Translations under genes and position numbers: made by a program | The notes under the pieces: generated by a model | Told to the model about the DNA's origin: nothing | Database searches by the model: none | What the model saw: only the letters and a program-made list of their open reading frames with translations | In this document: one piece after another, positions 15,086 through 62,537 of the stretch | Position numbering within the stretch: position 1 is the first letter of the stretch | Layout: every line of letters starts with the position of its first letter | From: Dicyema japonicum | Taxonomy: Eukaryota; Animalia; Dicyemida | Direction: 5' to 3' | DNA: 64,000 nt | Assembly: GCA_011109175.1 (NCBI GenBank) | Contig: RDEW01000041.1 | Span: 469,288-533,287, forward strand

Positions 15086-15089
15086 AATT

Positions 15090-21177: not shown

Positions 21178-21490
21178 GTGAGCTATCACTCCGACTGTTC
21201 TTTTCGTATTTTTGCAACAAGCCGACAAACGGTTGGATGTTTTATAGACACTCTTTGTGAAAAAGATCTGTGCCATCCTTCAAGTGAATTTGTAGTTCTT
21301 GGGAGGCCTTCTTCCTGTCTGTCGTGTACATTCCACATTTCCAAACTAAACAATGGTCTTATTCTCCTTTCACGTTGCAAGGCTCCGATCCATGTTGTCT
21401 CAAAATAGGTCAGAATATCTCCCAATACGTAATCAGTCTCGTCTTCTATAGTTTCAAGTAGCGATCGGAAACTCAAAATGACTTGAGTTA
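21178..21490 (-). mobile_element. MULE (Mutator-like) transposase C-terminal fragment
   Basis: YFETTWIG..PLFSLEMWNVHDR..RTTNSLEGWHRSF..HP, the characteristic post-catalytic MULE signature. Confidence 0.8.
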
Positions 21491-21599
21491 CATAAACGGC
21501 CAAATGTCTATCGGCCTAATATCTGTCTGCCAAATGTCCTTGTACCGATTATGCCAATTCTCAAGTCTGGAAAGCGCTTTGCCAAAACTGCTTGATCTT

Positions 21600-22035
21600 C
21601 CCAAAATCAAGACTAATCTAAATGGGATCCCAAAAGGCTTCCCTTTATCTGTTCTCCTCTATAACTTATTTCTACATGACTTACCTACTACCAAAGATCA
21701 GGAAACCATGTTTTTATCTTACGCGGACTACCTACTATCGAAGCAAGGGATAGATCTCCCTCCGTGGCTGTGACGGTGATCACATCTCAACCCATGAGTG
21801 TCACTGGCTATCCGCAAATATGTTCTCTTATCTGCATCCAAGTCTCAGTTCATTCTCTCCACTTAAGACAAGAGATTTAAGGATGGACTCGAGATATTCT
21901 TTGGAGACATCCCTATCCTTCTACATGAATCCAATAACTATCGACACTTTAAAAACGTTTTCCAGTCACATGGAGGAAGTGTTAACCAAGGGGCTACGTA
22001 AGTGGAACTATTATAAAGAAGAGTCCTTTCCCACC
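21600..22035 (+). mobile_element. Degenerate LINE RT fragment
   Basis: GIPKGFPLSVLLYNLFLHDLP...LSYADYL resembles the GVPQGSPLSP...YADD RT motifs. Confidence 0.7.
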
Positions 22036-23178
22036 TACAGAATGTATCAGTAAGCTCTACCTTCAAATTATTGAATATGCTCGTTCTGTCTAGAGATTTG
22101 CTATTTTCTCTAAGCGACCAAAAAGAATTTTTTCTTGGTAGTCTTGGGGTTTAAATAAATAATGTGCCATTTTTGTTAACCACCAGTTCTTTCACTTAAA
22201 GCGACCAGGGGAGCACAATTTTCGATTTAACAAAATTATTAGACATTTATTACCACTACGACTTGCATGAAACTCTTCTCGTTCCTTTTGTCCTACCAAT
22301 ACCTGACTAACACAAGTAGGTCATATTCGAAATGACAAACTTTACGAGAATCACGTAGAACCATTGAAGGATCCGGCATGGCGAATAATTGATCTTACAG
22401 ATTAGAAGGAAACCGACGACTTTTCCAGAATTACCTTTGGGGCAGAAACATCAGTGAGATTGACGATAAATTTAGTGAGATTTCCTCTACTATTTTCTTT
22501 CTCTTTCCCTAAGTATCTTTTGGATATAAAATACATCATCAAGCAGGTGGAACTTCTGTAACAAAATAATTGAAGAAAAATGGCCTTGTGTCTCGCGATC
22601 TTTTATGTCTGAAAATATGAAATTAAGAACTTCTTGAAATTCACAACTTTTACTACTTTTGAGTTAAGATGGAAAAGATAGTCACCACAGGATCAGCCTG
22701 ATTTTTAAAAAAGCCTGTATTTTCTTTAAAGCCCTGATCTTGAATATATTCCATTACACCTATTTCGATAATAGCATATAAGGCTCATAGGACCATAACC
22801 CAGTGGATATTTTCGGTGATCCTGATTTTCATAGATGACTCAGGTTTGTCTTGAATATGTCCAGAAAAATTCTAATAGTTTCTAGATCATTGAGAGCCTT
22901 GTCTGACCAATAAATTCGAATTTATTCATCTGTTTCGATTAATTCAAAGTTTGATTAACACGTGTTTAAATTTTTAAAATTATATAATCAAACTCATAAA
23001 ATATTGCAGCAACAAGCACGATGTCCTTCTCAGGACTATCTCCGGCATTCAAAATTCTCGGAGTCGCAGGTGAAATCAATAAAATTTAATTTTTACAAAT
23101 TAATTTTATTTTTTATAAAAATCAATAAATATTTTTTTTGAAAATTAATTTAATTATAAATTCAAAACTTGTTAGAAA

Positions 23179-26100: not shown

Positions 26101-26433
26101 CATGAAGCCCATTGTGATATCGATAGAAGGTTGCTCAAATTTAAATGTTCAGTTTGACGTCAACAATAACATTATTAAGCGTGTAACACAGATGAGCGAA
26201 TTTGGCTCTGGGCTTTGTGGGAATGCTACTTTGACAACTGAATCTCGTTATCTTTATTTTGATAATAGCAAATGTATTTATGTACAAGTTGATTCCGCAT
26301 GGCATTATTCAGAAAATTGAGAATGTATGTGTACACTCCAACATGGAAGAGATCCATTATTATACTGAAATTTTTAGAACAAATTACAATGTTTTAATTT
26401 TTGTAATTTTATAATTACATTAATCAGCATTAA
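23179..26433 (+). pseudogene. ZYG11/ZER1-like paralog C, copy 1 (split by a 1-N gap and a duplicated segment)
   Basis: Spliced product includes VLNVLNYLLDENETNVNLFIDLGG..ILAKFSKSRRLL..IISYLARSCMCLVFND..DIDRSLTSTITLLS..DERIWLWALWE..NYINQH*. Introns at 25597-25619, 25907-25930, 26130-26152 and 26247-26268, among others. Confidence 0.78.
23575..24278. repeat. Duplicate of about 21325-22030 (MULE and RT scraps), joined to paralog C through 'ctaca' microhomology
   Basis: Near-identical sequence that begins right after the single N at 23574. Confidence 0.8.
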
Positions 26434-27006
26434 GGCAAGTCTGCAAACATCCTACAGTCAATTGATTTCCTTATTAAAAATAATTTATCTAACTAAGCTT
26501 TCTTATTTTAATGTCTCCACATTAACCACTAATTTCAGTTTATCGCATTTTTCTTCTGAACAAAGACAAACTGTGGGACTTTGGAAGCATAAGATGCGCA
26601 AATTTAATGATAAAAAGCTTTGAATTCACTGATGTTGTGGATTAGAAACTACTGAAAAACTTGAGGAAATTACATAGTAATCGCCTCATTAAGAAGGAAA
26701 TGGAATTAATTCTAGATTTAGCTGCGAGAAACCCAAAACTTTTTAGCAAAAAGACAAAAATAGGACTCTGCTACTATGGATTAACTAGGGACTGATCCGT
26801 TCCATTGTACGTTTACGATAACAATTAATGACATCAACATAGATTTTTTAAGTGAAAGCAGATCCGTATTCATTACTTAGTTTCATTAATGAGGGTTAAA
26901 TTCCAACTTAGCTGATTCTGTGTCAAATCCAAATATATCACTTGACGGCTATGTAGTTATTGAATTTGTCGGTAATTTTTTGTTTTTAATGATAATAATC
27001 ATTACC

Positions 27007-27330
27007 TCATCTTTGCTCTGTGTTCTTCCCTTGTGCTTCCTGAATTTTCAGGGCCACCTTCACGTGATCTGGAGACAAGCCAAGTTCTTCAATGTCATGT
27101 GAGATTCTTTCGCTGAGTAGAGCATACACATTTATTATTGTGATGAGTTCTCTAGATTCTTGAGAAAGTATGTTTTCATTCGACCCATAAGTGGCCGTGG
27201 AGTCAATAAAAACGATTCTTTGGACTGCAAGACCCAGTCCATAGTGTCTTGAGTCGGGATAGTTTCTTGTAGGTAGCACACTGTTAAACCTTATGCTTTT
27301 AGGTCCTCAAGTAGTTACTCTTTTGTATTT
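27007..27330 (-). mobile_element. RTE-like APE endonuclease fragment
   Basis: Frameshifted LTVCYLQET, HYGLGLAV and ITIINVYAL match the xxQET, GVGF and YAP motifs of APE. Confidence 0.6.
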
Positions 27331-28409
27331 TTGCGCAATTCCCAGAACATTGAAAAGAGAGTCGTTCCGAATGCTTTAAGACATAAAGCGCAAGATTGAT
27401 ATGCCACCACCTCAACCTTTGTCAGTTTAATTGTCCATTTTGATAATTTTTGTTTTACAAATATTTAAAATTTAAAATATAATTATTAATAAATAAAAGA
27501 AAATTTACCTGGCGAGGTTTCATTATGGCATGGAGCCAGTTTTTGTTGTTTCTAAACAATTTTTTATTCTCTGCAGAAACAAAAGAATTTAATTCTGATG
27601 TTACTTGTTGATATTTCGAAAGGAAAGTGGCAGATGTGGACTCATGTCAGTTGAAGAAGACAACAGGAGCCATTGTATTAAGTCAACCTTCATATACAAG
27701 AAAGAGGAGTCCTGGGATTAAGAAAAGAAGGCAATCATTGAGATGAGATGGTTTATATAGTCCTTTACATATGAATGTGAGGGCTTGTTTTTTTATAATA
27801 TTGATCGCATCATCTCGGTCATGGAGGTCAACAACTGAGCAATTAAGTTTATTATCAGAAGAGGCTGGATAGGGTTTTAATGAAGAAAAGAGCCTTGAGA
27901 ATCATCCAGTACAAGTTATTGAAAGTTAACTCAGATTTTCGACTAGTGTGTACGACTACAAGAGGAGTATTAAAGAGTAACGAGAATGTTTTCTAGAGTT
28001 CATTCACAAGGTTAGACGTAAGAAATAAAAGTAGAGTGCATCATGTCCCGTCATATTTAACAGTCTCATAAATTCTACCTTACATAATCAATATTTGATG
28101 TTTATAGTTAAATATGCATGGTCAACTGGCCTAGTGGTTGGTTGATCACCAAAACCCAAAGTTCTTAGAATATAAACAAAATTAGGTCCATAAAAGGAAA
28201 AAGGACCGTTTTTTATGTGAATAATTCAATTCTTTTGGTTATGTAGTACTTGTCGTACGTTTAATTCATCAATGAAGAAGATTTTATCAAACATCACATG
28301 AACATTCGCCAGAGTTCATATCCTATACGACAATAAATTTTTTGAATAAAAAAAATTTTAATGCAAAAACTATCAACTACTGGCTTCTATCATAATGTTC
28401 ACCATGTCG

Positions 28410-33990: not shown

Positions 33991-36300
33991 TCACAAATAA
34001 CATTATCGGATTAATTAGTGACGCAAAAAAATTACAAAAGTGAAAAGCAAACAAGCCAAAGTCGGCCTACACAACACTTCCCGTCATCCGGGAACTACAA
34101 ATATCTACTCATTCACAGTTGAGAACAAGACACTGTGCAGAGCTATAGAATTTGAAATAGATAAGAAATGGCTATAATAGCGATCAACTAAGAGCACATA
34201 ATTGTGAGAACGAAACCCAATAATGGAAACCTGATGAATTCAACCGATTCCATTATGAGATACTCAGACACCCTTGTTGTACTGATATCAGTCATTTCAA
34301 ACTACAAGCGCAATAAAAATCGCCAATATATTGTATCTCCACAATGAGTCAAGATCTATTCTACAAAAAATCTGATAAGACAACCTTTATGGAGACCGTG
34401 GACAATATTTGCTCTTTTGGACTGGAAAACCACAAATTTAGAGAAATAACTTCGAGGTCATCAGAAATTGTAATGAAGAACTTACCCCTTTGGGTGGAAG
34501 ACAGTGACCTCCTGGACTGCCTCCAAGAGTTGGACCTATCCACTACAAAGGTCTCTCGAATTTTCAGAGAAGGACAGACGTTGCCAATGGCCAAGGATTC
34601 AGTATGACAAAAAGCGGAGGCCACATCGTTAATTCGTGCGATTTTTTTATTGGAAGAAACATGGTCACTTGAGAATGGATGCGGTGAGAACCGTTGATTT
34701 GTTATGACTGCCAAAAAATCGGGCACGTTGCGTACCAATGCAAGAATTGTTTCCGCTGTGCAGGAGAACACAACATCTCCGAATGCAAGAAACAACTGTG
34801 TCAACTGTGAATTTACTTAACACGGAGCCAGATATGGAAGATCCCCGTAAAAAACACTTTATACTCGCAGCAATAAAACGGAACAAGACAAGAAAAAGAC
34901 CAATGTTGAATACAACAAGGAAACACCGCTAAAATAAACACGGTCTCAGAGTCAATGAAACCGAGAGAGAAGAATAATCGACCCCCGAAATATTAGGGAC
35001 GAGAATCGGTTCGGCAGACCCAAAATAACATGCCTGAAAAGATCTTCAAGAAGTTAGAAGATATAATCTCAAGATTATAGGAACTCAGTAAAATCCCCGG
35101 AATGGATTTAAAAAAGATGTTGACTTTTGCAATGGAAAGCATCATGAGCTAACACCCTAAAAAAGAGGCGCCACCAAGATTGACGTCTTGGTGGTCAATG
35201 AGAACAAGATAAAAAGACCAATACTACTACTATGGAGAAATACAACTCGATAGAAATACCATGGACGGAAGGTGACACGGCTGATACGGGAACCTCTTAT
35301 ACCGTGATGACCTACAAGCACGGAACCGGAATATCGTCTCGGACACATTATGTGAATTCGTTTCCACCAACCGTTTTACAGAGATTAACGGATTTTTTGA
35401 AAAAATGCAATGTCTATTTTGGTGAGCGACATAAATTCAAAGAACGTCAGTTACAGGTGACACAAGACCAATGGCGACTGACGATACTGAAAATTTATGC
35501 TGAGATCGCATTACATCGGATGAGCTCAACCGTTTTTCTCATTATGGTGGAGACATGTTTAGTGTTTTCCTTGTATCACCGCTACTGTACACCGATGTGG
35601 AGAGACCAAGAACTATGTGTGATATCGGTAGTGACCATTTACCACAGGAACTGGTCTTGAATTTAGTACTAGATGTCATTCACACATCAAATTGAAAGAC
35701 TACAGGAATGACCTCACAAGGAACCTAAAAAAGTGGCGGAGGAACCCATTTCAACAAATGAAATCAAAAATACGAACCACAATCTCACAAACATCATAGG
35801 GACATATTTGCAACTATATGCTAAGAAGAATTCTTGAATGAAAACCGTAACAAATGTTTCCACATTTCACCTATAACCTTGGGACTGATCAAAGAAAAAA
35901 AGTCGACTGAGAACTAAGTTAAGAAGATGTGTTGACCAAATGGACCACATGGCGCTACAAATCGGCTCAAATAACCAAAAGAACCATCGTATGCTGGCAT
36001 TAAGTACGGAGACCTTTCTTTTCATTTACACGAAGATAATCCTACCGAGTTTATTACATGGATGCGAGGCGTGGTACCAATTTACGAAGAAAGAAAGGAT
36101 ATTATCACTACTGGCGAAGTCTAGAAGATCAGCCATAAAGTTAGCCCTGGGCAGAAGACTACGCGACGTCCTGAGTTCTAAAAAAGACGGGAGTCTTGCC
36201 CCAGTGAAGCAAATTGTGAAAAACAGGATTTGTAGATTCCTACGTAAGAACGTACATTAATTTTGGAGATGGGGGAAGTCAAAGACCAGGCCGCAAAGCG
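33990..36300 (+). mobile_element. RT-deleted APE LINE, copy L3 (best-preserved gag knuckles)
   Basis: 34700-34786 encodes CYDCQKIGHVAYQCKNCFRCAGEHNISEC (CX2CX4HX4C followed by CX2CX3HX4C). APE and C-terminal remnants follow. Confidence 0.8.
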
Positions 36301-36647
36301 GACTATTTAAAACCCCTATATCTAACTCCTAATCCTCGAAGTTTGTCGAGATTTATTTTTAATTGACCAGCCTCGATGGACTTTTAGATCATCTAAGAAT
36401 TGTGATATTTGAATGAGTTTGTCAGAAGAATTCTAAATTTTGATTGTTTATATCAATGTTAATGAGATTTTAGAAACAAATTGGTGTTTTGTTCACATCA
36501 GATAATTGTTAAAAACATTTGTATTTGAAAAAAAGTCAGTCTAGCAGAAATAATTAATTAGTCCTAAGTATGAAATTAATTGCCATCAAGTGATGAATAC
36601 GTATTGTTAATAATTTATTAAAAGGGAGATTAGTTAACTTGAAGACT

Positions 36648-38977
36648 TCATTCGTGACGATTAATGTAATCCTAAAATCATAAAAATAGCAACATTGTAA
36701 TTTATTCTAAACATCTCAGCATAAAAATGGATCTCTTCCATATTGGATTTTAAACAGACATTCTCAATTTTCTGAATAATGTCATGCGGAATCATCATTT
36801 TCATAAATATATTTGCTACTTTAAAAATAAAGATTAACGATAGTCGTAGTTAAATTGGCACATTCCCACATAACCCAAAGCCAAATACGCTCATCCGTGT
36901 TCACATTTAATAAATTTATATTTGACATCAATGACCTTCGAAATAGAAAATTAGACTACCGAGTAAAATAATGGATATTGAAATTTGCTTGATGCGGATT
37001 TTCTTTTATAAATTGGTAAATATTATTTAGAATATATTCTTTTGGACTCAAATCACCGAAATCGAAATTTACAAATGTGGGCAAAATATGATTCGGATCC
37101 CCCAATATAAAAGTCATGCAACTCCGGATAAAATATTGCCCGTCAAAAAAGAGTTGATTTAAGTCAGGATTCCTTTCAATGAAACACCGATTTTACAATA
37201 AATCTTCTATTACTCCACACGTCGCCAGTAAACCTCTTGCTTTTGGATATTTAGCTAGAGTTGCCACAATTTTGATGATTCTAATGGTGATATAATGACC
37301 TGAAAATCCGGCTATCTGAACTCTTTTAAAAGCATTGTGAATTTGAACAATTCCATCCAAATCAACAAACAAATCCACGTTTTTTTCATTTTCGTCTAAA
37401 TAAATATATGTTGAATGCCTAGAAGATATCTCAACACATTGAATAAGCCAGAAGTCGTGCAGTTGCATTTTTCAAGAAATTTAAAGCAATACTAGGATTA
37501 TCTTTTCATTATTTTTAAACTTTGACAAGTCCGGAATAGCCAAGATAAGTCAGAAAGTTTATGGTCATATCTTTCATAATTTCACTTTCGTAGCTGCTCC
37601 AAAAACACATTTTTTTAAGCACGTATGAGAACGAAGGTAACTAAAATTAAAAAATTTCAAACGAAAACTGAAGTCTCCCATGGTTTTACAAACTTTAATA
37701 TGCTTACACAATCAGTAATTTTCTAAAAATTTGAAATTATAGTACATTTTCATCATCAAAAGGTCGGTAACGATTAACCACGTCAAGAAAAGTATCATAA
37801 ATCATGCTAATAATAGAATCAACACATACCAACGATTAAAGTAAGAAATTTCATATTCTTGGGTGATCTCAATAAGAATAGTCCTGGAGTAATAAAATTC
37901 GCTTACATGACATTCTCTGAAATCACAAACTCAGTCGGAAATAACTGGTCGAAAAACTGAACTAATATTTTAAAATACTTTAAAAAATCGACTTAATATT
38001 TTATTTATAAATTTTTTATTCCCATTGCAAATTTCATTAATGACTTTATGTAATTGTTTTTCATCTCCGTAATCTAAGACAGATCTAAGTAAGTTGTTTA
38101 CAAGTGATTCTTTATCATTCTATCATATATCATAAAATTTACCGATTCGTTTATATCCACACTGAAATTTGTAATTAGGTCCAAATTATTTTTTCTCAAT
38201 CCATGTTTGGCCACGTGTCTATGATTATTATAATCGATAACTTTGTTAATTTTTCCATGTCTATATTATAACCCGATAGATCGAGAAATGTTAGATTTTT
38301 GGTTTTCTCGAGAAGAGGAAAACAATTAACCTTAAATGCATCAATATTTGTTTCATCATATTCACTAGTTGCATACCTAAATTCACTGAATTTTATATAA
38401 ATTAATCCACAGGACTCTGGACTGTTTAGGTTAGCGGCAAACTCTTCAAAGTCAATAATTTGAACGTTCATAAGGTATATATGCTCAAGTTTATCCATTA
38501 TTTTAATTGTGCTGTTTTTAAAAATTATTTTATCAATTTCTAAATCGCCAAGCTCAAGGGATTTGATTTTGTTAAATCCAGTCATAAATAGGGAATGTAG
38601 CAAATCTGGGTCATCATATTCTTTAAGTGAGAATGATTGGACGTTATTGGGTGAGAATGGTAGTAAAGGATTATTTTTTGAAATTATTTTACATAATTTA
38701 ATATTCGATAAATTTGGATAAACTTGAATCATCTTGACAATATCTTCAACATCAATTCGCTTACAAAATTCAACGCAGAAAACATTTTTGTACTACATCT
38801 GAAATCTTATGTAATTTGAATTTCATTTCCAAATGGATCTCTCGCATATCTCAGTTGTTTCAGTAATCTTTTAAAAATCATTTTTCTAGTTTTTTCGTTT
38901 AATTCTTGATATTTTTTCTCATTAAAGTCTATTCGAATTTGATTAAGGCAATGCGCATATAATGAGGGTATTTCCAG
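36648..38977 (-). pseudogene. ZYG11/ZER1-like paralog A, copy 3 (start ATG changed to CTG, small deletion near 38820)
   Basis: Colinear with A2 and keeps the 3' exons to DYINRHE*. Introns are 22-24 nt plus one of about 29 nt. Confidence 0.78.
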
Positions 38978-43729: not shown

Positions 43730-45760
43730 AAAATAAAACAAAATCACTAGGTAAACCCGAACATTCTCAACAACCATCCCATCTTCGATTGCAGTTTCTC
43801 ATGACATCTTACTGACTCGCACTACGGGCAGAGGTTCACGTGATATGAACCGCACACCCATTCTTTTCATGAAAGATAAGCGACGTGCACCTGAGCAATT
43901 CCAACGTTAATGCAAGTAATTTGTTCAGAAACTCTTTTTTTCTTGGAGAGAAGTTACCATCTCATTATCTTCCAAGTACATCAGCTTTCATGAGTAATCA
44001 GTTCCACTAGATGTTAGACGCACGTTATTAGTAACACTAATGTATGCCCATATTGTCAATTGAATGTAAATCAATAAAATTTAAATAATAAAACTGGGAT
44101 GATGTTTACTGGTGTAATATTGAGCATCTTTAATTCTCAACAATGACAGAACACTTTTGATACTTCCATATTTATTATTTATTTTAAAACCCAAAGACCA
44201 ACAAAAAAGAAAGAATTAACTCGATAAATTAAGTGATCCCAGCCTCCAACATCTCTCGAATTCTCTTTGAATGCTCCGCAGTGAACCAACACCGTTCCTG
44301 AAATGTCTTTTATTTCTGCAGAGGAATTCTATCGGAGTGCACTTTTTTAATACCGATTTATATGCATCATTAATTATTTAGTTGTAAGAAAAAAATCATT
44401 AATTATTTAGATGTAAGTAGACCTCCGATGTAAACGGAGAGAGCAAATGATTTTGTGTCAACCTACCATTGGCCGAAACCTGAAACAGATGAATCACATG
44501 ACATTACTCTAATAGAAGACAAGTAGAAAAAAAGAAGAGAAACTTTATCAGAGTATACCTATTAAGGGACATCGAACCAATGTGCTATTTACAGTATGAC
44601 ACCCTAAGCACTAAGCTACCTAAGTAGCTTACAGTTGTAAGGATTCATTTGTGTTTTCCGATCATTTTCTAGAAATTTGTAAATAAGTGTTAAAATAGTT
44701 AAATATTTAAGCCACGTAAAATAATCATTGATTTACCATGACGACACGTGGTTTTCCTGCTGTGGTGACTCTCAGTGTAAATTATACACGAGGGGAATCA
44801 GTTTATCTCTCCAACCTCAGCATTTACTTCGATTAGTGGATATTCTCGTTCTCCCTTTGTTGCTTCTGTTAGGCTTTGGAACAAAACCTCATTTCTGACT
44901 CTTCTCTAACGATCATTCTTTAAGGATACCCGCAGAAATGACTAGAGCTTGGTCTCCTGATTGCAAACCTCAAGGTGGACATGCTTACACAAGAGTCGAA
45001 GCTTTACATATCTGTCCTTATCCTTGTTTCTCGAGATAGTCTGTATTTCGAGAGGACTATGTGAAGGGATTTGATGGACTCCTAAAATTATCATGAGAGA
45101 GCTTTTATTCATGGTGTCTTTTTATATTCATAATTTATCGGGCAATGTCGGTGGAATGTGGTGATTTGAACTCTTGGCTTCGATCACCATCCACCGACAG
45201 TCCTGGCAAGGACTGATCCAATCCAGAATAGTTAAAGGTTATAGTTCTTAATGAGTGTAGATGTTGCGATAGTTGAATTGGTTGCATTTCTAAAATTTCC
45301 TGAGATTCAAAAAACTAGTTATATCAAACATAGATTTAATTTTCGAAATAGTATTTTACTGCAGCATGGCAACTTCCCCATCTAATAATTATAAAGATAC
45401 ATTGTTGCAAAAAATCTGGAGGACATCCAGTATCTCTGAAAGGATGTCTAGATTTATGCTTTGCTTTCAAATTTCTTTGATGAATAGTAGAGCATGCATT
45501 TTAAAATTAAAAATTTTAAAATTATTTCCAAAGACCAAGGGTAACCAAACTAACTAACTCTTCGATCCTGAGTCGTTCCAGCATTCTAGAACTTGTCACC
45601 AGTTAACGACGTTGTCCCCAAGGAAGAATTGTTGGATCCTCTTAATGCCGGCCAATCATTGGGCTCCTCCACAGTAAGGTGATCCAATGACGCCATAAGA
45701 AAATAAATAATTTTACCAAACTATCTAGCACCACATGGCGCAACGAGATTTTTAGGATTT
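43730..45760 (-). pseudogene. Unidentified gene remnant B, copy 3
   Basis: Colinear with copies 1 and 2. Confidence 0.35.
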
Positions 45761-46019
45761 TTAAAATTTTTAAATCTTAGATTTGTTATATATTGATTTA
45801 GTAGCATTTATAAGTCAGAAATAAATTAATTAATTAAAAATTACATTTTTAATTATTCAGATTAAATTATGAACAAACACGAATTATAAGATCATACAAT
45901 TAAACTATCACAAAAATTTTGAACCCATTTTTATAGTTTCTGGTATAGTTATTTGCCATCAGTTTTACATTTACCTAACTTTTTAATTTATAGCATTTTA
46001 AGTCAGAAAAATGAATACA

Positions 46020-47780
46020 CGTTTATTAAGTGTTGTGGTGTGATCAACAAAAATCTCAGATGGAACATAAAGAACGAAAAGAAGACAAAGTACGAGGAAC
46101 AAATCCAGTACGGACAAATCAGGTATGTTTTTTTTATGTGGAAATCGAAGATCAGGAAATATGGGATTAACTGCACACAAAGTGAATCATTCGTCCATCT
46201 GGGCTGCATAAAAATGAGTAAAACTTCGCCGAGACGCTGTCGAGTTGGGTGTGCCCCTCTTGTATTGGAATGGAGGCCCCCAAGCGCGAAAAAATAACTC
46301 AGTCAAACTTTACACTGCCACATACAGACCATACTCTTTTGAAGATCTCGAACCTCAGGAAAGCCATGAAGATCCAGAAAAATCCCTAAAGGAGTACGAA
46401 TTGCCGCAGCAACGTGTCTTTCAGATGCCATTGATCACGCACTATCCTCTGACAGTTAGGAATCCTGGCTAAAACTTATATGCTTTGCACCTGTCGCACT
46501 CGGAATACCTACAAAGGAATCTGAGGACAATAATAAAGAAACAAACTCCCAACTCAACTTATCCGGGAAACTGAAACAAACATAATGAATTTTAGCTGTC
46601 ATAACATACACGCAATACTTGAACATCCACTTAATGTCAATGAGGTCGAAACCAGAGGAGCATTCATCAAAGATGCCCCCAACAAACTGAAGGAGAGAGT
46701 AAACCGGAAACTTCTGGAAGGCGACGTGCTGGCAGCCTTACGAGTTATCACATCCGATGACACAGTATTGTCTTGTACCCCCGAGGGCCTAAATACCTTA
46801 ATACTGAAGCATCCAGATGCACCGACTGACTATGAAAAGTTTTTGAATCCTGAAGGAACCCAGGAGATAATCATTACTGAATTTGAAGTGCGCCACAGAA
46901 TAACTTCCTTCGCCGCTAGCAGCGGTGGAGGCTTGGAAGGGTTACGTCCTGGCTATATTAAGGACCTTACGTCCACTTACACCTCGGAAGCTGGACGATT
47001 TCTTGTCAAATCAATTACGGACCTTGTCATAAAATTGGTTAACGGCGACATCCCAGAATATGCCAGAGAATTGCTCTTTTCCGCAAGGCTACTTGCTTTC
47101 AAAAAACCCAACAGAGGAATCCGTCCCATTGCGGTCGGGAACTATTTTAGAAGACTTGCAGCAAAAGTAGCATTGATCTCTGGTGAGCCGACAATTTGGA
47201 GAGGAGTTCTTTCTTAAACAAATAGGTGTTTGTATCCAGAACGGATGTGAGGCTCCGGTTCATGCAGCAAGATGTTTCTTCACACAAAGAAATATTTCAA
47301 ATGAATGCATTGGAATTAAATTAGACATAGCGAATGCATTTAATTCTCTTAGAAGAGATAAAATTATGGAAACGTGTTGGAAGAGGGCTTTAAAGCTTTT
47401 CCTTTTTGTCAAATTATCCTATGTGGAAGATACGTCTCTGGTTTTTAAAAATGAAATTATTAAATCAAAGTCGAGTGTCCAACAAGGAGATCCGCTCGAA
47501 CCTTTCTTATTTGCCCTGACCATTGATGAGGTTGTGAGATCAATCGATGCTCAGCTAAATCTCTGGTACCTCGATGATGCCACAATAGGAGGATTGTTCA
47601 AGGAAACATACAATTCATTACGTAAAGGGTTACCCGCTTCAAAACATTTTGGCTTGGACATCAATGTTAATAAATCAGAGCAAATAAGTGTCTCATATCC
47701 ATACACCGACTTCCTCTCTATCAAGGAGTCTTTTAACGAACTGCTTCCTGGGATCCCGACTGTGCCAGTTGATAAATTTT
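46020..47780 (+). mobile_element. CRE-3 family element, PHD to RT, 3'-truncated (less decayed copy)
   Basis: ORFs 46585-47217 and 47183-47875: GGLEGLRPG, IRPIAVGNYFRRLAAK, KLDIANAFN, QQGDPL, WYLDD. Confidence 0.88.
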
Positions 47781-47789
47781 CTCATTCAT

Positions 47790-48250
47790 ATTCAAAGAAT
47801 TTTCTCACTCACTCAAAGCATTTTCTCACTCATATTAGAAAGACCTTTTCCAAGGTTATCACGACGAAGATATAACCATTGGTTATTTGAAAGAGATTTA
47901 TTGAATTTGTTTTATAAAGACCAAACTCTCAATTCCTCTGTTAACTTCTGTAGATATTATTTTCAACATTTTTGACTGTTAATCCGACATCAGGACCCTC
48001 TATTAATCCCAGATATTTATATCTTCCAATTCAATCTAACATCCTTGATTCCTTTGATAATAGATCTTAATTATAACCTGTCTTTTCCAAATTCTTTTCA
48101 AAGTAAACAGCTTTAAAATATATTGTTAACGTCTTCGATCATTTTCATTATAACCTCTTCGTTATTCGAAACAATTTCAGATCATCTAAGGACAGATGAT
48201 GGCTAGTCGAAAATGACGAAACTGTTCTATTTCTTGAATGAATTTTCCAG
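47790..48250 (-). mobile_element. R4-like RT fragment
   Basis: Copy of 15090-15560. Confidence 0.62.
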
Positions 48251-50060
48251 ATTTTTTCGAAATTTCAAAAATCAAAAATAACATTATCGGATTAATTAAT
48301 GACGCAAAAAGTTACTAAAGTGAAAGCAACCCAGCCAAAGTCGGCCTACACAACACTTCCCGTCCTCCGGGAACTACAAATGTCTACTCATTCACAGTAG
48401 AGAACAAGACACTGTGCAGAGCTATAGAATTTGAAATAGATAAGAAATGGCTATAATAGAGATAAACTAAGAGCACAAATTGTGAGAACGAAACCCAAAA
48501 ATGGAAACCTGACAAATTCAACCGATTCCACTATGAGATACTAGACACCCTTGTTGTACTGATGTCAGTCATGTCAACTACAAGCGCGGTAAAAATCGCC
48601 AATATATTGCATCTCCACAATGAGTCAAGATCTATGCGGATGAGTCACAGAAGCCCTGGTACCTTCCATCTCGAAATCTACAAAAAATCTGATAAGACAA
48701 CCTTTATGGAGACCGTGAATAATGTTTGTTCATTTGGACTGGACAACTACAAATTCAGATATAAATAACCTCGAGGTCATTAGAAATTGAATGAAGAACC
48801 TACCCTTTGGGTGGAAGACAATGATCACCTGGACTACCTTTAAGAGATAGCCCTATCACTACGAAGGTCTCTCGAATGTTCCGAAGTGGACAGACGTTGC
48901 CAATGGCCAAGGCGTCAATCGGACACAAAGAGGAGGCCACATAGCAAATCCGTGAAACCTTTTAATCGGAAAACATGGTCACTTGAGAATGGATGCGGTA
49001 AGACCCGTGGATTTGTTATGACTACTAAAAAATCGGGCACTTTGCATACCAATGCAAAAAATTGTTTCCGCTGTGCAGGAGAACACGACATCTCTGACAT
49101 CTCGAATGATAATGTGAATTCGTATCCATCAACCGTTTTATAGAGATTAAGGATTTTTTGAAAAAAATGCCATATCTATTTTGGTGAGCGACATAAATTC
49201 AAAAAACGTCAGTTACAGGTGCCACAAGACCAATGGCGACGGACGATACTGAAAATCTTATGCTGAAATCGCATTTAATCGGATGAGCTCAACCGTTTTT
49301 CCATCCATGGTTGAGACATGCTTAGTTTTTTCCTTGTATCACCGCTACTGTACACCGATGTGGAGAGACCAAGAACAATGCGGGATATTGGTAGTGACCA
49401 TATACCACAGGAACTGGTCTTGAATTTAGTACCAGATGTCATTCACACATCAAATGGAAAGACTACAGGAATTACCTCACAAGGAACCTAAAAAAGTGGA
49501 CGGAGGAACCCATTTCAACAAATGAAATCAAAAATACGAACCGCGATCTCACAAACATCATAGGGACATATTTGCAACTATATGCTAAGAAGAAGTCTTG
49601 AATGCAAACCGTAAGAAATGTATCACATTTCACCTATAACCTTGGGACTGATCAAAGAAAAAAAATCGACTGAGAACTAAGTTAAGAAGATGTGTTGACC
49701 GGATGGACCACATGGCGCTACGGATGGGCTCAAATAACCAAAAGAACCATCGTATGCTGGCATTAAGTACGGAGACCTTTCTTTTCATTTACACGAAGAT
49801 AATCCTACCGAGGTTATTATATGGATGCGAGGCTTGGTACCAATTTACGAAGAAAGAAAGGATATTATCACTACTGGCGAAGTCTAAAAGATCAGCCATA
49901 AAGTTAGCCCTGGGCAGAAGACTACGCGACGTCCTGAGTACTGAAAAAGACGGGAGTCTTGCCCCAGTGAAGCTAATTGTGAAAAACTGGATTTGTGGAT
50001 TCCTACGTAAGAACGCACATTAATTATGGAGATGGGGGACGTCAAAAGGACCAGGCCGCA
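48250..50060 (+). mobile_element. RT-deleted APE LINE, copy L4 (additional internal deletion near 49105)
   Basis: Colinear with L2 and L3. Confidence 0.75.
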
Positions 50061-50417
50061 AAGACGTACTATTTAAAACCCCTATATCTAACTCCTAATC
50101 CGGGAAGTTTGTCGAGATTTATTTTTTACGACCAGCCTCGATGGACTTTTAGATCATCTAAGAATTGTGATATTTGAAAGAGTTTGTCAGAACAATTCTG
50201 AATTCTAAATATTGATTGTTTATATCAATGTTAATGAGATTTTAGAAACAAATTGGTGTTTTGTTCACATCAGATAATTGTTAAAAACATTTGGATTTGA
50301 AAAAAGTCAGTCTAGCAGAAATAATAATTAGTCCTAAGTATGAAATTAATTGCCATCAAGTGATGAATACGTATTGTTAATAATTTATTAAAAGGAAGAT
50401 TAGTTAACTTGAAGACT

Positions 50418-52763
50418 TCATTCGTGACGATTAATGTAATCCTAAAATCTTAAAAATAACAACATTGTAGTTTGTTCTAAAAATCGCAGCATAGAAATGG
50501 ATCTCTTCCATATTGGAGTTTAAACATACATTCTCAATTTTCTGAATAATGTCATGCGGAATCATCATTTCCATAAATATATTTGCTACTTTAAAAATAA
50601 AGATTAACGATAGTCGGTAGTTAAATTGGCACATTCCCACATAACCCAAAGCCAAATACGCTCATCCGTGTTCACATTTAATAAATTTATATTTGACATC
50701 AATGACCTTCGAAATAGAAAATTAGACTACCGAGTAAAATAATGGATATTGAAATTTGCTTGATGCGGATATTCTTTTATAAATTGGTAAATATTATTTA
50801 GAATATATTCTTTTGGACTCAAATCACCGAAATCGAAATTTACAAATGTAGGCAAAATATGATTCGGATCCCCCAATATAAAAGTCAAGCAACTCCGGAT
50901 AAAATATTGCCCGTCAAAAAGGAGTTGATTTAAGTCAGGATTCCTTTCAATGAAACACCGATGTTACAATAAATCTTCTATTACTCCACACGTCGCCAGT
51001 AAACCTTTTGCTTTTGGATATTTAGCTAGAGTTGCCACAATTTTGATGATTCTAATGGTGATATAATGACCTGAAATTCCGTCTATCTGAACTCTTTTAA
51101 AAGCATTGTGAATTTGAACAATTCCATCCAAATCAACAAACAAATCCACGTTTTTTTCATTTTCGTCTAAATAAATATATGTTGAATGCCTAGAAGATAT
51201 CTCAACACATTGAATAAGCCAGAAGTCATGCAGTTGCATTTTTCAAGAAATTTAAAGCAATACTAGGATTATCTTTTCATTAATTTTAAACTTTGACAAG
51301 TCCGGAATAGCCAAGATAAGTCAGAAAGTTTATGCTCATATCTTTCATAATTTCACTTTCGTAGCTGTTCCAAAAACACATTTTTTTAAGCACGTATGAG
51401 AACGAAGGTAACTAAAATTAAAAATTTTCAAACGAAAACTGAAGTCTCCCATGGTTTTACAAACTTTAATATGCTTACACAATCAGTAATTTTCTAAAAA
51501 TTTGAAATTACAGTACATTTTCATCATCAAAAGGTCGGTAAGGATGAACCACGTCAAGAAAAGTATCATAAATCATGCTAAGAATAGAATCAACACATAC
51601 CAACGATTAAAGTAAGAAATTTCATAGTCTTGGGTGATCTCAATAAGAATAGTCCTGGAGTAATAAAATTCACTTACATGATATTATCTGAAATCGACAC
51701 TTAGTCTCATACAACTGGTCGAAAAACTGAACTAATATTTTTTAAATACTTTCAAAAATCGACTTAAAATTTTATTTCTAAATTTTCTATTCCCATTGCA
51801 AATTTCATAAATGACTTTATACAATTGTTTTTCATCTCCTAAATCTAAGACAGATCTGAGTAAGTTGTTTACAAGTGATTCTTTATTATTCTATGATATA
51901 TCATAAAATTTACCGATTCGTTATATCCACACTGAAATTTGTAATTAGGTCCAAATTATTTTTTCTCAATCCATGTTTGCGCACGTGTCTATGATTATTA
52001 TAATCGATAACTTTGTTAATTTTTCCATGTCTATATTATAACCCGATAGATCGAGAAATGTTAGATTTTTGGTTTTTCGAGAAGAGAAATACAATTAACC
52101 TTAAATGATCAAAATATTTGTTTCATCATATTCATTAGTTGCATGCTTAAAATCACTGAATTTGATATAAATTAAACCACAGAGACTCTGGACTGTAATA
52201 GGTTAGCGGCAACTCTTCAAAGTCATAATTTGAACGTTCATAAGGTATATATGCTCAAGTTTATCCATTATTTTAATTGTGCTGTTTTTAAAAATTATTT
52301 CATCAATTTCTAAATCGCCAAGCTCAAGGGATTTGATTTTGTTAAATCCAGTCATAAATAGGGAATGTAGCAAATCTGGGTCATCATATTCTTTAAGTGA
52401 GAATGATTGGACGTTATTGGGTGAGAATGGTAGTAAAAGATTATTTTTTGAAATTATTTACATAATTTAATATTCGATAAATTTGGATAAACTTGAATCA
52501 TCTTGACAATATCTTCAACATCAATTCGCTTACAAAATTCAACGCAGAAAACATTTTTTTGTACTACATCTGAAATCTTACTTAATTTTGAATATAGTTC
52601 GTCTGGAAATTCAATTCGAAATGGATCTCTCGCATATCTCAGTTGTCTAAGTAATCTTTTAAAAATCATTTTTCTAGTTTTTTCGTTTAATTCTTGATAT
52701 TTTTTCTCATTAAAGTCTATTCGAATTTGATCAAGGCAATGCATATAATGAGGGTATTTCCAT
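50418..52763 (-). pseudogene. ZYG11/ZER1-like paralog A, copy 4 (full length, several 1-2-nt indels)
   Basis: ATG at 52763 and TGA at 50418, with the exons seen in the other copies. Frameshifts are small, so some could be sequencing errors. Confidence 0.75.
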
Positions 52764-52949
52764 TTACTAACAAAATGATGAATTTATAATTATGTTAATT
52801 TTCAAAAAAATATTAATTTTACTTAAAAATAAATTTATTTATTAGAATAATTAAATTTTATTGAATTTTATAACAATATAGTATCCTTGGTCAAATGTGA
52901 TCCTCCAATACTCGGCGTTGTGTGAGTCATGCCTCTAATGTGGATGTCT

Positions 52950-53270
52950 GTGAGCTTTCACTCCGACTGTTCTTTTCGTATTTTTGCAACAAGCCGACAA
53001 ACGGTTGGATGTTTTATAGACACTCTTTGTGAAAAGATCTGTGCCATCCTTCAAGTGAATTTGTAGTTCTTGGGAGGCCTTCTGCCTGTTTGTCGTGTAC
53101 ATTCCACATTTCCAAACTAAACAATGGTCTTATTCTCCTTTCACGTTGCAAGGCTCCGATCCATGTTGTCTCAAAATAGGTCAGAATATCTCCCAATACG
53201 TAATCAGTCTCGTCATCTATAGTTTCAAGTAGCGATCGGAAACTCTCAATGACTTGAGTTACATGAACGG
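52950..53270 (-). mobile_element. MULE transposase fragment
   Basis: Copy of 21178-21490 (ORF 53014-53274). Confidence 0.8.
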
Positions 53271-54008
53271 CCAAATGTCTATCGGCCTAATATCTGTCTG
53301 CCAAATGTCCTTGTACCGATTATACAAATTCTCAAGTATGGAAAGCGCTTTGCCAAAACTGCTTGATCTTCCCAAAATCAAGACTATCAAGCAGGTGGAA
53401 CTTCTGTAACAAAATAATTGAAGAAAATGGCCTTGTGTCTCGCGATCTTTTATGTCTGAAAATATGAAATTAAGAACTTCTTGAAATTCACAACTTTTAC
53501 TACTTTTGAGTTAAGATGGAAAAGATAGTCACCACAGGATCAGCCTGATTTTTAAAAAAGCCTGTATTTTCTTTAAAGCCCTGATCTTGAATATATTCCA
53601 TTACACCTATTTCGATAATAGCATATAAGGCTCATAGGACCATAACCCAGTGGATATTTTCGGTGATCCTGATTTTCATAGATGACTCAGTTTGTCTTGA
53701 ATATGTCCAGAAAAATTCTAATAGTTTCTAGATCATTGAGAGCCTTGTCTGACCAATAAATTCGAATTTATTCATCTGTTTCGATTAATTCAAAGTTTGA
53801 TAAACACGTGTTTAAATTTTTAAAATTATATAATCAAATTCATAAAATATTGCAGCAACAAGCACGATGTCCTTCTCAGGACTATCTCCGGCATACAAAA
53901 TTCTCGGAGTCGCAGGTGAAATCAATAAATTTTTTTTATACAATAAAAATCAATAAATATTTTTATTTGAAAATTAATTTAAAAATAAATTCAAAATCTT
54001 GTTAGAAA

Positions 54009-55806
54009 ATGGAGACACCATCATTATATACGGTTTGCGTTAAAAATATTCTGAAAAACTGTGATGAGATAAAAATCAAAAATTAAGCGAAAAATCGAAC
54101 AAAATTTTTGATAAAAGATTTACGAACTTGGATATTTAAAAGATTTCCACTTAAGAAGAGTTCGCAAATCAAATATCTACAAGATTTCAAATGTTGTACA
54201 GAAAAATATTTTCTGCATTGAATTTAGTAAACAAAATGTTGACGTTAAAGACATTGTCAAGATGATTCAAGTTTATCCGAATTTATCGAATATTAAAATA
54301 TGCGAAATAACTTCATCGAAAAAAGTCCTTCACTACCATTCTCACCCAATAACGTCCAATCATTCTCACTTCAAAAATATGATGACCCAGATTTGCTACA
54401 TTGCCTATTTATGACTGGATTTAACAAAATAACATTCTTTGAACTTTTTCGTATCATAAATTACCGTCCAGTGACTTTTAAAAATAGCACCTTGAAAATA
54501 ATGGAGAAACTGGAACACATCGAATTTTATAACCTTTCCATCATCGACTTTGAAGAATTTTCTAGAAACTTAAACAGTCCAGAGTCATTGTGGTCTGTTC
54601 TTTTGTAAAATTCAGTTATTTTGCGTACATACAGAAATTATATAGTAACGGTATATATTTGGATTCAGATAATATTAGTTGCCTTTTTGAAAAAGCCAAG
54701 AACATTACTTTTGTAGATTTATCTGGGAATATTGTCAATGTGTAAGAAGTAACAGAGTAATTAATTCTAGTTATTTTAGCCAAGTTCCAAAAAACGAATT
54801 GAAGAGAATTCATTGGGAGAATTTCTTGAGTTTCAGTGAAGGTATAAACGAATCAGTAAATTGACGAAATAATATAGAATGATCGAGAATCAGCTGTAAA
54901 TAATGCAGTCAAGTTTTTCGAACATATATCCTTGGATATTTTACACGGAAGTAACGAAGTATTGGATGATATCCTAGATGAGTTTAACAACATGAAAATT
55001 AAGAGTATCTTTTTAAACCGATTTTTGAAAGTATTTTAAAATATTATTATAGCTTCTCTATCAGAGTTTTAAGAGTAAGTACAGAGATCCAAATGTTTTT
55101 ATGTAATTGAATTTTTTTACTCAGATTTATTCTACTGGGATTACAGAAATACATGAGATTTCGTATTCTAATCGTTGGTATAAGTTGGTCTCATTTTTAG
55201 TTTAATTTATTATACTGTTCTTAAAATTCTTAGTAATCACCTGATTCAGGTAGTTTCCGTAATTTAACTTTTAAGGCTATTCCTTCCTGTGTAAACTTAA
55301 TCCTCGATTTAAATCCATGGAACAAATCTATCTTCGTTTGCTAATTTTTTATTTTAGCTGCCTGAACTGTCATTCATGTTTTTTAAAATGTCCAAATTGG
55401 AAGACCGTGCAGCTTATATAAAAAATGGGTGTCAGCCTATAATGAAAAAATTAAGTATCGAATTTTTAACTTATTTGGGGCACTTGGGAATTATCAGACT
55501 TTACAAAATAAATAATCTTAGTACTGCTTTGAACGTATGAAGCATTCTGCCTCAAGACTTATGACGTATTGAATGTGCTGAACTACCTGTTAGGTACTAA
55601 ATACATTTAGTTAGATGAAAATGAAACGAATATAAATTTGTTTATTGACTTGGGTGGAATAAGGTCCATTTGTAAAATTTTCGAAAGAATCGAGAATGTA
55701 TGTGTATACTCCAACATGGAAGAGATCCATTATTATACTGAAATTTTTAGAACAAATTACAATGTTTTAATTTTTGTAATTTTAGAATTACATTAATCAG
55801 CATTAA
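54009..55806 (+). pseudogene. ZYG11/ZER1-like paralog C, copy 2 (about 530-bp deletion at 55691)
   Basis: Starts METPSLYTVCVKNI. Introns at 54757-54779, 54856-54877, 55031-55052, 55103-55124, 55178-55200, 55253-55275, 55336-55357, 55594-55614 and 55764-55785. Confidence 0.78.
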
Positions 55807-55834
55807 GGCAAGTCTGCAAACATCCTACAGTCAA

Positions 55835-56251
55835 TTGATTTCCTTATTAAAAATAATTTATCTAACTATGCTTTCTTATTTTAATGTCTCCACATTAACC
55901 ACTAATTCAGTTTATCGCATTTTTCTTCTGAACAAAGACAAACTGTGGGACTTTGGAAGCATAAGATTCGCAAATTTAATGATAAAAAGCTTTGAATTCA
56001 CTGATGTTGTGGATTAGAAACTACTGAAAAACTTGAGGAAATTACATAGTAATCGCCTCATTAAGAAGGAAGTGGAATTAATTCTAGATTTAGGTGCGAG
56101 AAACCCAAAACTTTTTAGCAAAAAGACAAAAATAGGACTCTGCTACTATGGATTAACTGGGACTGATCCGTTCCATTGTACGTTTACGATAACAATTAAT
56201 GACATCAACATAGATTTTTTAAGTGAAAGCAGATCCGTATTCATTACTTAG
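55835..56251 (+). other. Conserved ORF-like segment directly downstream of paralog C (one in-frame TAG at 56015-56017)
   Basis: YRIFLLNKDKLWDFGSIRFANLMIK..*KLLKNLRKLHSNRLIKKEVELILDLGARNPKLFSKK. A weakly similar peptide lies downstream of paralog A (F*NLINID..LDDLKVHRGWS..LGVRYRGFK). Confidence 0.4.
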
Positions 56252-56399
56252 TTTCATTAATGAGGGTTAAATTCCAACTTAGCTGATTCTGTGTCAAATC
56301 CAAATATATCACCTGACGGCAATGTAGTTATTGAATTTGTCGGTAATTTTTTGTTTTAATGATAATAATCATTACCTTATCTTTGCTCTGTGTTCTTCC

Positions 56400-56680
56400 C
56401 TTGTGCCCGCGGCTTCCTGAATTTTCAGGGCCACCTTCACGTGATCTGAAGACAAGCCAAGTTCTTCAATGTCATGTGAGATTCTTTCGCTGAGTAGAGC
56501 ATACACATTTATTATTGTGTGGCCGTGGAGTCAATAAAAACGATTCTTTGGACTGCAAGACCCAGTCTATAGTATCTTGAGTCGGGATATAGTCTCTTGT
56601 AGGCAGCACACTGTTAAACCTTATGCTTTTAGGTCCTCAAGTAGTTAATCTTTTGTATTTTTGCGCAATTCCCAGAACCT
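56400..56680 (-). mobile_element. RTE-like APE fragment, second copy
   Basis: Colinear with 27007-27330, with a deletion. Confidence 0.55.
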
Positions 56681-58389
56681 TGAATAGAGAGTCGTTCCGA
56701 AAGCTTTGAAGACATAAAGCGCAAGATTGATATGCCACCACCTCAACCTTTGTCAGTTTAATTGTCCATTTTGATAATTTTTGTTTTTACAAATATTTAA
56801 AATTTAAAATATAATTATTAATAAATAAAAGAAAATTTACCTGGCGAGGTTTCATTATGGCATGGAGCCAGTTTTTGTTGTTTCTAAACAATTTTTTATT
56901 CTCTGCAGAAACAAAGGAATTTAATTCTGATGTTACTTGTTGATATTTCGAAAAGAAAGTGGCAGATGTGGACTCACGTCAGTGGAAGAAGACAACAGGA
57001 GCCATTGTATTAAGTCAACCTTCATATACAAGAAAGAGGAGTCCTGGGATTAAGAAAAGAAGGCAATCATTGAGATGAGATGGCTTATATAGTCCTTTAC
57101 ATATGAATGTGAGGGCTTGTTTTTTTATAATATTGATCGCATCATCTCGGTCATGGAAGTCAACAACTGAGCATTTAAGTTTATTATCAGAAGAGGCTGG
57201 ATAGGGTTTTGAATGAAGAAAAGAGCATTGAGAATCATCCAGTACAAGTTATTGAAAGTTAACTTAGATTTTCGACTAGTGTGTACGACTACAAGAGGAG
57301 TATTAAAGAGTAAAGAGAATGTTTTCTAGAGTCCATTCACAAGGTTAGACGTAAGAAATAAAAGTAGAGTGAATCATGTCCCGTCATATTTAACAGTCTC
57401 ATGAATTCTACCTATCTAACATAACCATAATTAATATTTGATATTTATAGTTAAGTTTATATGGTCAACTGGCCTAATGGTCGGTTGATCACCAAAACCC
57501 AAAGTTCTAAAAGTCAAGTCAAAGTTAGGTCCATAAAAGGAAAAAGGGCCGTTTTTTTTCAGTGTGAATAATTAAATTTTTTTGGTTATGTAATGTAACA
57601 TTTGCTTCTCCAATAAAGAAGAATTTATCAAACATCACTTGAAAATTCGCCAAAGTTCATATCCTATACGACAATTATTTTTTTGAATAAAACAAATTTT
57701 AATCAAAAACTATCAACTACTGGCTTCTATCATAATTGAGAACATATTTCCTCTGAAGATTTGCAAGGAAATACACTCAATGAGCAAACTCTTTTCTCTC
57801 CTATCATTTTTTGTTCATGATTAGCGATCCGATTCTGTTTAACTGGACCAGTGATTTGCTTTATTTGATTCCTGACGTTTGCGACTGGTTCAAAAATGAA
57901 CTGTTTACCAGGAGACGACAGTAATTATCACTATGGCATCTCTTGGAAATAAAGTGTGAGTTATAAAATAAGGTTTAAACAATAGAGACAGCACTATTCT
58001 TTGCCTGACGAAATGCAGTTTTTCAATTTCTATTGTTAATTAAGGTTTTTTTACCAGCTTTATTAATCCACATCCAATATCGACCCCCTTAGTTATGTAC
58101 CTAGTTCATTATGTTAGATCACTTTATAGCTTTTCCTTAAAATTCCAGTTCCATCAAAAATCTCAATTTTTTTTATTTCAATAAAATTCTACGATAATAA
58201 TCGAAAACTATCATCTTTCTATAAACCCAGAGAATATCCCTCTGGATCCCCAGAGAATCTTTCTTTCAAGTTTCCTGTTCCCTCTTCGAGGATAATCGTA
58301 CCGACCAACTCATCCAAAAGATGTTCACCATGTCGGCTAGTCAGTCAGCATATCCACCGTTGAGCATATCTTCATTGTCTGGTCCGAGG

Positions 58390-62005: not shown

Positions 62006-62537
62006 NNNNNNNNNNNNNNNNNNNNNNNNNNNNNNNNNNNNNNNNNNNNNNNNNNNNNNNNNNNNNNNNNNNNNNNNNNNNNNNNNNNNNNNNNNNNNNN
62101 NNNNNNNNNNNNNNNNNNNNNNNNNNNNNNNNNNNNNNNNNNNNNNNNNNNNNNNNNNNNNNNNNNNNNNNNNNNNNNNNNNNNNNNNNNNNNNNNNNNN
62201 NNNNNNNNNNNNNNNNNNNNNNNNNNNNNNNNNNNNNNNNNNNNNNNNNNNNNNNNNNNNNNNNNNNNNNNNNNNNNNNNNNNNNNNNNNNNNNNNNNNN
62301 NNNNNNNNNNNNNNNNNNNNNNNNNNNNNNNNNNNNNNNNNNNNNNNNNNNNNNNNNNNNNNNNNNNNNNNNNNNNNNNNNNNNNNNNNNNNNNNNNNNN
62401 NNNNNNNNNNNNNNNNNNNNNNNNNNNNNNNNNNNNNNNNNNNNNNNNNNNNNNNNNNNNNNNNNNNNNNNNNNNNNNNNNNNNNNNNNNNNNNNNNNNN
62501 NNNNNNNNNNNNNNNNNNNNNNNNNNNNNNNNNNNNN
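62006..62537. other. Assembly gap (532 N); single Ns also at 23574 and 61781
   Basis: N characters in the sequence. Confidence 0.99.

Follow-up and report, generated by a model that had tools for sequence, protein, structure and literature searches.

Predicted spliceosomal introns of 21–29 nt in a multi-copy LRR/ARM gene family of the dicyemid Dicyema japonicum

Segments of 21–29 nt, bounded by GT and AG or, at one site, by GC and AG, interrupt a multi-copy gene family in the window, as we call the whole 64,000-nt stretch of Dicyema japonicum DNA analysed here, and we consider it very probable that they are spliceosomal introns shrunk to this size within a dicyemid LRR/ARM gene of 15 exons and approximately 673 codons. 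A spliceosomal origin had already been proposed in an earlier note on this DNA, made from the letters alone, and is borne out by the conservation of GT/GC–AG borders, by drift in length through steps that are not multiples of three while the frames are kept, and by the 673-codon open reading frame that is obtained once the segments are taken out. As part of the same reading, our results are best explained if distant relatives of the family, about 90% identical to the copies seen here, are transcribed and spliced, and if the copies in the window have decayed to pseudogenes, persist as very relaxed genes, or owe part of their damage to assembly error.

Results

Intron sites and their borders

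At least six copies of the family, full or partial, are present in the window; they form two subfamilies, A and C, and lie within a nested segmental repeat (Table 1). Intron sites were obtained by transferring the C strings across five copies aligned with MAFFT; A introns I6 and I11 were positioned by eye, as the automatic alignment was offset there. All of the 13 GT..AG segments that the earlier note had listed in subfamily C were recovered by this projection with exact coordinates and lengths, each starting with GT and ending with AG. Nine of them had been read from C2 and four from C1, because the donor of I8 is CT in C2 and the acceptor of I13 is AT in C1. The count of 13, however, is one short, as a fourteenth intron (I0) was found upstream in C2, and this intron is needed because the frame of the first exon would otherwise have no link to the next exon, both in C and in A20 and A52. 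Similarly, the size of 21–24 nt given at the time holds for C sites I1–I13, but introns of the A copies reach 29 nt, and I0 of C2 and C1 measures 26 nt (or 23 nt if the downstream donor is taken). Overall, lengths range from 21 to 29 nt, and both the median and the mode are 23 nt.

One or both C copies have GT..AG borders at each of the 14 sites, and so do the A copies with the exception of I9, which is GC–AG in all four of them. Introns of A38, A52, A20 and of the partial copy A7 lie at the same positions and in the same phases as those of C and are of nearly equal length, as had been stated from the first reading. The introns are rich in T and poor in C residues (7%, vs 15% in exons); they begin with GTA or GTT, end with TAG, CAG or AAG, and contain A residues upstream of the terminal AG.

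Table 1. Positions in the window of the predicted introns, gene copies, retrotransposon reading frames, repeats and N bases (strand in brackets).
Feature	C2, or only position	C1	A38	Length in C (nt)	Length in A (nt)	Remarks
Intron I0	54590-54615 (+)	24689-24714	38410-38386 (-)	26 (or 23)	25	23 nt in C2 if counted from 54593; acceptor CG in C1
Intron I1	54757-54779 (+)	24856-24878	38241-38219 (-)	23	23	GT..AG, phase 2
Intron I2	54856-54877 (+)	24955-24976	38142-38120 (-)	22	23	phase 0
Intron I3	55031-55052 (+)	25128-25149	37978-37957 (-)	22	22-24	phase 0; 22, 23 and 24 nt across three A copies
Intron I4	55103-55124 (+)	25200-25221	37906-37884 (-)	22	23	phase 2
Intron I5	55178-55200 (+)	25276-25298	37829-37807 (-)	23	23	phase 2
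Intron I6	55253-55275 (+)	25351-25373	37745-37723 (-)	23	23	phase 0
Intron I7	55336-55357 (+)	25434-25455	37662-37641 (-)	22	22	phase 0
Intron I8	55499-55521 (+)	25597-25619	37520-37492 (-)	23	29	donor CT in C2; intact in C1
Intron I9	55594-55614 (+)	25693-25713	37396-37418 (-)	21	23	phase 1; GT donor in C, GC-AG in A copies
Intron I9, GC-AG form in the other A copies	51167-51189 (A52), 18560-18582 (A20), 7135-7157 (A7), all (-)				23
Intron I10		25907-25930 (+)	37196-37173 (-)	24	24	deleted from C2
Intron I11		26130-26152 (+)	36959-36936 (-)	23	24	deleted from C2
Intron I12		26247-26268 (+)	36838-36816 (-)	22	23	deleted from C2
Intron I13	55764-55785 (+)	26391-26412	36693-36672 (-)	22	22	last intron; acceptor AT (26411-26412) in C1
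Copy C2	54009-55806 (+)					ATG site 54009 to TAA 55804-55806
Copy C1		24276-26433 (+)				97% identical to C2; all 14 intron sites
Copy A38			36648-38977 (-)			~68% identical to C; 14 introns
Copy A52	50418-52763 (-)					~68% identical to C; 14 introns
Copy A20	18098-20162 (-)					I0-I11; 3' end replaced from about 18098
Copy A7, partial A-like (3' part)	6378-7919 (-)
Matching 5' part of the split A-like copy, inverted	10618-11178 (+)					reverse-transcriptase element between the halves
Non-LTR retrotransposon ORF	756-2312 (-)					RVT_1 and N-terminal PHD finger
Non-LTR retrotransposon ORF	7972-10554 (-)					RVT_1; between the halves of the split A-like copy
Non-LTR retrotransposon ORF	46585-47875 (+)					RVT_1
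Repeat set	5215-7919 = 35463-38176 = 49217-51946
Repeat set	11173-16435 = 43842-49094
Repeat set	22538-28396 = 53386-57736
N bases	23574; 61781; 62006-62537					two single N; 532-nt run

Reading frame and tests against chance

Between A and C, whose identity is about 68%, 7 of the 14 introns differ in length by 1–2 nt, a number that is not a multiple of three, and the flanking frames are nonetheless preserved. When C1 is compared with A38, the indels inside introns measure 1, 1, 1, 6, 2 and 1 nt (two alignment artefacts aside), whereas those inside exons measure 3, 3, 3, 6, 18, 6, 3, 21 and 6 nt, any additional small ones coinciding with frameshifts private to a single copy. An A consensus was built as the majority of the four A copies, with one poly-A indel set by the state of A52 and of the C outgroup; once the 14 segments are removed it reads as one uninterrupted frame of 673 codons in the standard code, with no in-frame TAA or TAG. 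Its stop lies seven codons past I13, and the similarity between A and C ends beyond it; in C2, the TAA follows I13 by six codons. All exons of A38 are open, and their frames join correctly through the introns save at two 1-nt lesions. Splicing single copies directly runs off frame, in fact, because each of them carries lesions.

A stretch of 1545 nt in A38 could be traversed without meeting a stop by using 11 segments of 21–29 nt. None of 300 random controls (first-order Markov sequences of the same composition) was traversed, their mean reach being 134 nt and their maximum 636 nt, and the antisense strand of A38 reached at most 131 nt in the same crossing test. As decoys we took 21 exonic GT..AG segments of 21–26 nt lying wholly inside C1 exons: only 3 (14%) retain both dinucleotides in A38, compared to 13 of the 14 introns from C to A in the curated reading, the remaining one being the intron with the GC donor. 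The claim that chance would not produce such a pattern is well supported by these random controls and decoys. A stop would be met inside 9 of the 14 introns if they were retained, both 24-nt introns among them. Conservation is 0.69 in intron interiors and 0.69 in exons, over a baseline of 0.51 for non-homologous sequence, and from A to C substitution rates show no difference between the two.

Two automatic procedures were rejected. A dynamic programme that sought the fewest introns made false picks, such as 54678-54700 and 55535-55556, which are coding as judged by the A copies, and because it chose some wrong segments the intron models were curated from the paralog alignment. A permissive chain search (20–30 nt, GT or GC donor) returned long chains across much of the window and, being unspecific, was not used for calling genes. 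A histogram of GTA..TAG spacing over the whole window gave a weak bump only, at 23 nt; the window consists mostly of repeats, and the histogram is uninformative on intron length genome-wide.

It could be argued that the segments are never removed from RNA, and that the copies are dead, frameshifted pseudogenes in which GT..AG pairs are a by-product of AT-rich sequence. The lesions found in all copies and a dN/dS of about 1 among recent ones agree with such a view, as do the long stop-free chains that the permissive search finds in much of the window. It is hard to reconcile, however, with borders that are both kept at all 14 sites over 31% divergence (I9 as GC–AG in A), when only 14% of decoys keep theirs, with length changes that are not multiples of three in these segments only, with the 673-codon consensus frame and the 300 random sequences that could not be crossed, and with the contigs, described below, that lack exactly I12 and I13. 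We regard it as highly improbable.

Contigs from DNA and transcript-like runs

The region 50330-56300 was compared with the contigs of four runs from one 2019 sample (X1–X4), which contain the whole stretch including intergenic DNA and behave as DNA runs, and with those of X5, a 2017 run that bears the same species label and comprises 11.9 Mb of contigs. In the 2019 DNA runs, contigs pass uninterrupted through I2–I9, an example being an 829-nt contig that spans 54834-55660, and no joint of 21–29 nt was seen among their contigs in this region. In X5, only parts of both genes and one very high-copy repeat are covered, and this exon-plus-repeat coverage makes it look like a transcriptome.

A 190-nt contig of X5 corresponds to the A52 exon between I12 and I13 (50464-50585) with about 90% identity. 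Of its loose ends, one agrees at 24 of 30 positions with the close of the exon upstream of I12 and the other at 26 of 29 with the beginning of the exon downstream of I13; both abut precisely where the borders are predicted, and the two introns are absent. A second X5 contig, from a C-like relative, stops at 55762 and goes on as the start of the last exon of C2, with I13 absent. One short X5 contig of low depth, on the other side, reads unspliced through I0 of A52 (52143-52196). These assembled contig ends, coming from a run of guessed kind, lend limited, if direct, support to the removal of I12 and I13 by splicing in relatives that are about 90% identical; alternatively, though less probably, the X5 contigs without I12 and I13 may represent a processed retrocopy in DNA.

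The same contigs bear on the possibility that the segments are removed from DNA by programmed elimination, in the manner of ciliate IES, or skipped in translation, rather than spliced. Their sizes do resemble those of Paramecium IES, which measure 26–28 bp, and dicyemids are among the organisms for which elimination of DNA has been described. Many circular contigs were also described in a dicyemid assembly (Zverkov et al. 2019, PMC6543705). The borders here, however, are GT..AG and not TA, the DNA-run contigs retain the segments with not a single joint of 21–29 nt, and the contigs that lack segments come from X5, in which exons and one repeat alone are represented; the reading frame, in turn, follows the standard code without in-frame TAA or TAG. 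To our mind such a scenario is so improbable as to deserve almost no weight, and splicing remains the preferred reading.

Gene copies and their lesions

As assembled, all the copies in the window are damaged and none is intact. The first exon of C2 is frameshifted early on and contains stops, and it has a +2-nt shift in common with C1; a TAA follows at 54742-54744, then a 1-nt deletion near 55134, the CT donor of I8 at 55499 and, at 55691/55692, the loss of about 525 nt, with which I10–I12 are gone. In C1, the exon that follows I2 has lost single nucleotides at two places, one deletion of 8 nt affects the exon after I10, and small indels are present in the exon after I11. The acceptors of I0 (CG) and I13 (AT) are altered as well, and a duplicated block of 700 nt, adjoining the single N at 23574, interrupts the first exon. 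This block (23575-24280) is 99% identical to 21335-22039 and duplicates 54177-54415, and its edge at the N looks like an assembly join.

In A38 the start codon reads CTG, a poly-A run is short of 2 nt, and single nucleotides are deleted right before I0 and in the exon that links I11 to I12. A52 has many private indels of 1–2 nt. At many of these (near 52456, 52224, 51920 and 51695, for example) every short-read contig aligned there has the state of the other copies, and the "frameshifts" of A52 may be errors of the assembly consensus rather than mutations. The D. japonicum assembly was obtained by merging Platanus and Falcon assemblies (Lu et al. 2019, PMC6736024). Four mate-pair libraries and a single paired-end library went into it, a design with which the one large and several small DNA runs of 2019 and the small 2017 data set agree. 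Because short-read contigs disagree with several of the A52 indels and the assembly is a merged one, part of the damage seen in the copies may be consensus error.

Values of dN/dS range from 0.85 to 1.3 among recent copies and are about 0.55 between A and C, and among the A copies differences fall equally on the three codon positions. Judging from these substitution patterns, the family appears to be weakly constrained over the long run, with local copies that drift nearly neutrally.

A 178-codon open frame of A38 runs through I0, where the 1-nt deletion (38386-38411, minus strand) places the 25-nt intron in frame and free of stops. This could be a candidate exonised micro-intron, brought into frame by a compensating deletion, or an assembly error. 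Because I0 is in frame in A38 and kept in an X5 contig, I9 is GC–AG in four A copies, and intron interiors are conserved like exons, one might speculate that the array catches micro-introns in the act of changing state, nearly all bases of a 23-nt intron being constrained and introns being lost by exonisation rather than by deletion; we consider this unlikely, and prefer to see in the segments ordinary, if very short, spliceosomal introns.

Relationship to ZYG11 and ZER1

The earlier assignment of the family to ZYG11/ZER1 finds a parallel in architecture, but not in any significant match of the exon pieces. Residues 5–14 of the A consensus hold a BC-box-like motif that fits [APST]L...C...[AILV]. 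Among the exon pieces, Pfam LRR_4 was matched with E = 0.0013, under the curated cut-off, and language-model neighbours point to LRR (0.95); for the exon between I9 and I10, the nearest language-model neighbours are armadillo-repeat clusters (0.97), a ZER1-like C-terminal cluster scoring 0.93. No match to ZER1-family Pfam entries was obtained for the exon pieces at E up to 10, and none to PDB chains, the solved chains of ZYG11B and ZER1 included. When the 178-aa N-terminal reading frame of A38 was used as query, phmmer returned generic LRR matches only from 1.84 billion representatives, and a library of 5.8 billion proteins returned nothing; an Atlas search with the exon between I10 and I11 yielded noise only. 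Like the CUL2 substrate receptors ZYG11 and ZER1, the predicted protein would combine a BC-box-like motif, leucine-rich repeats and an ARM-like C-terminal half, and unlike them its exon pieces have no significant match to the ZER1 Pfam family or to the ZYG11B/ZER1 chains. On these comparisons of predicted protein sequence, a ZYG11/ZER1 identity is only a lead.

Genomic setting

The segmental repeat in which the copies lie is 93–98% identical between its units, and the A and C genes recur in it together with retrotransposons as a higher-order unit. Measured per 2 kb, GC content lies between 28 and 49% and averages close to 35%. No Rfam match was found within the 64-kb window, either to rRNA or to snRNA. 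Between A52 and C2, at 52948-53268, lies a repeat of about 320 nt, also found at 21176-21615, whose short-read contig depth in X1 exceeds that of the flanking sequence about 80-fold (120,000 vs about 1,500) and which is the best-covered part of the region in X5. It may be a SINE-like element.

Discussion

If the segments are introns, as we think, a conventional U2-type spliceosome would cut the pre-mRNA at GT(a/t) and at (t/c/a)AG, and would work with these minimal signals across about 23 nt; whether by intron definition, as the earlier note suggested, is a matter of conjecture. A message in which an intron was retained would nearly always run into a premature stop.

The earlier note stated, correctly as the literature shows, that dicyemids have introns in this range. 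Dicyemid introns shorter than 30 nt have been known since 2010 (Ogino et al. 2010 Gene 449:70, as cited in PMC6543705) and were confirmed genome-wide in 2019 (Lu et al., PMC6736024; Zverkov et al., PMC6543705), and a 2026 comparison of 51 animal genomes remarked upon the reduced GTa and AG signals of dicyemids (Hadjez et al. 2026, PMC13644364). Like those, the introns described here are GT–AG, mostly below 30 nt, several per gene, and provided with signals reduced to GTa and AG. Published values are a median of 27 bp for Dicyema sp. and a mean of 38 bp for D. japonicum (PMC6736024, PMC6543705, PMC13644364), and with a range of 21–29 and a mode of 23 our introns fall slightly under both; they differ also in that the gene holding them is not a conserved one but belongs to a family that is lineage-specific, multi-copy and for the most part damaged. 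The D. japonicum genome has a GC content of 36.7%, with 49% repeats including LINEs and 4% gaps (Lu et al. 2019, PMC6736024), and the window resembles it in GC (about 35% vs about 36%), in its LINEs and in its scaffold gaps, with homopolymer indels in addition.

The micro-introns reported here are very probably genuine, but the phenomenon is already published, and there is no new biology in their size. What the analysis does illustrate is that real gene structure can be recovered from the raw sequence of a genome that defeats ordinary gene finders and ORF-based tools. Useful details of local interest are the 15-exon model of a lineage-specific LRR/ARM family, the GC–AG micro-intron, and the finding that several "pseudogene" lesions in a repeat-rich region are probably assembly errors.

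Introns of the same length class are also known from ciliates. Those of Paramecium measure about 25 nt, and the ones whose length is a multiple of three carry in-frame stops, which makes their retention detectable. Introns of 15–16 nt have been described in Stentor (as cited in PMC13644364). Unlike in ciliates, the window has a standard genetic code and animal-type retrotransposons, and not one of the 673 codons is a TAA or TAG read as sense.

Among animals, the closest in size are the introns of myxobolids, whose medians lie between 22 and 27 bp, 22 bp being the lowest animal median known (Hadjez et al. 2026, PMC13644364). Introns of Henneguya, Thelohanellus and Myxobolus resemble ours in their reduced motifs, in the few A residues upstream of AG and in the U2-type machinery inferred for them. 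The genomes, however, differ, as H. salminicola has a GC content of 29% and myxozoan genomes carry relatively few transposable elements (PMC13644364), whereas the window has about 35% GC and a heavy load of LINEs, together with nested segmental repeats and scaffold gaps. On these grounds a myxobolid host is improbable, even though the median of 23 nt would suit one and the 2019 date of the runs would agree with the first data on H. salminicola. By this comparison, the short introns of myxobolids would be of independent origin, and their likeness to those of dicyemids convergent.
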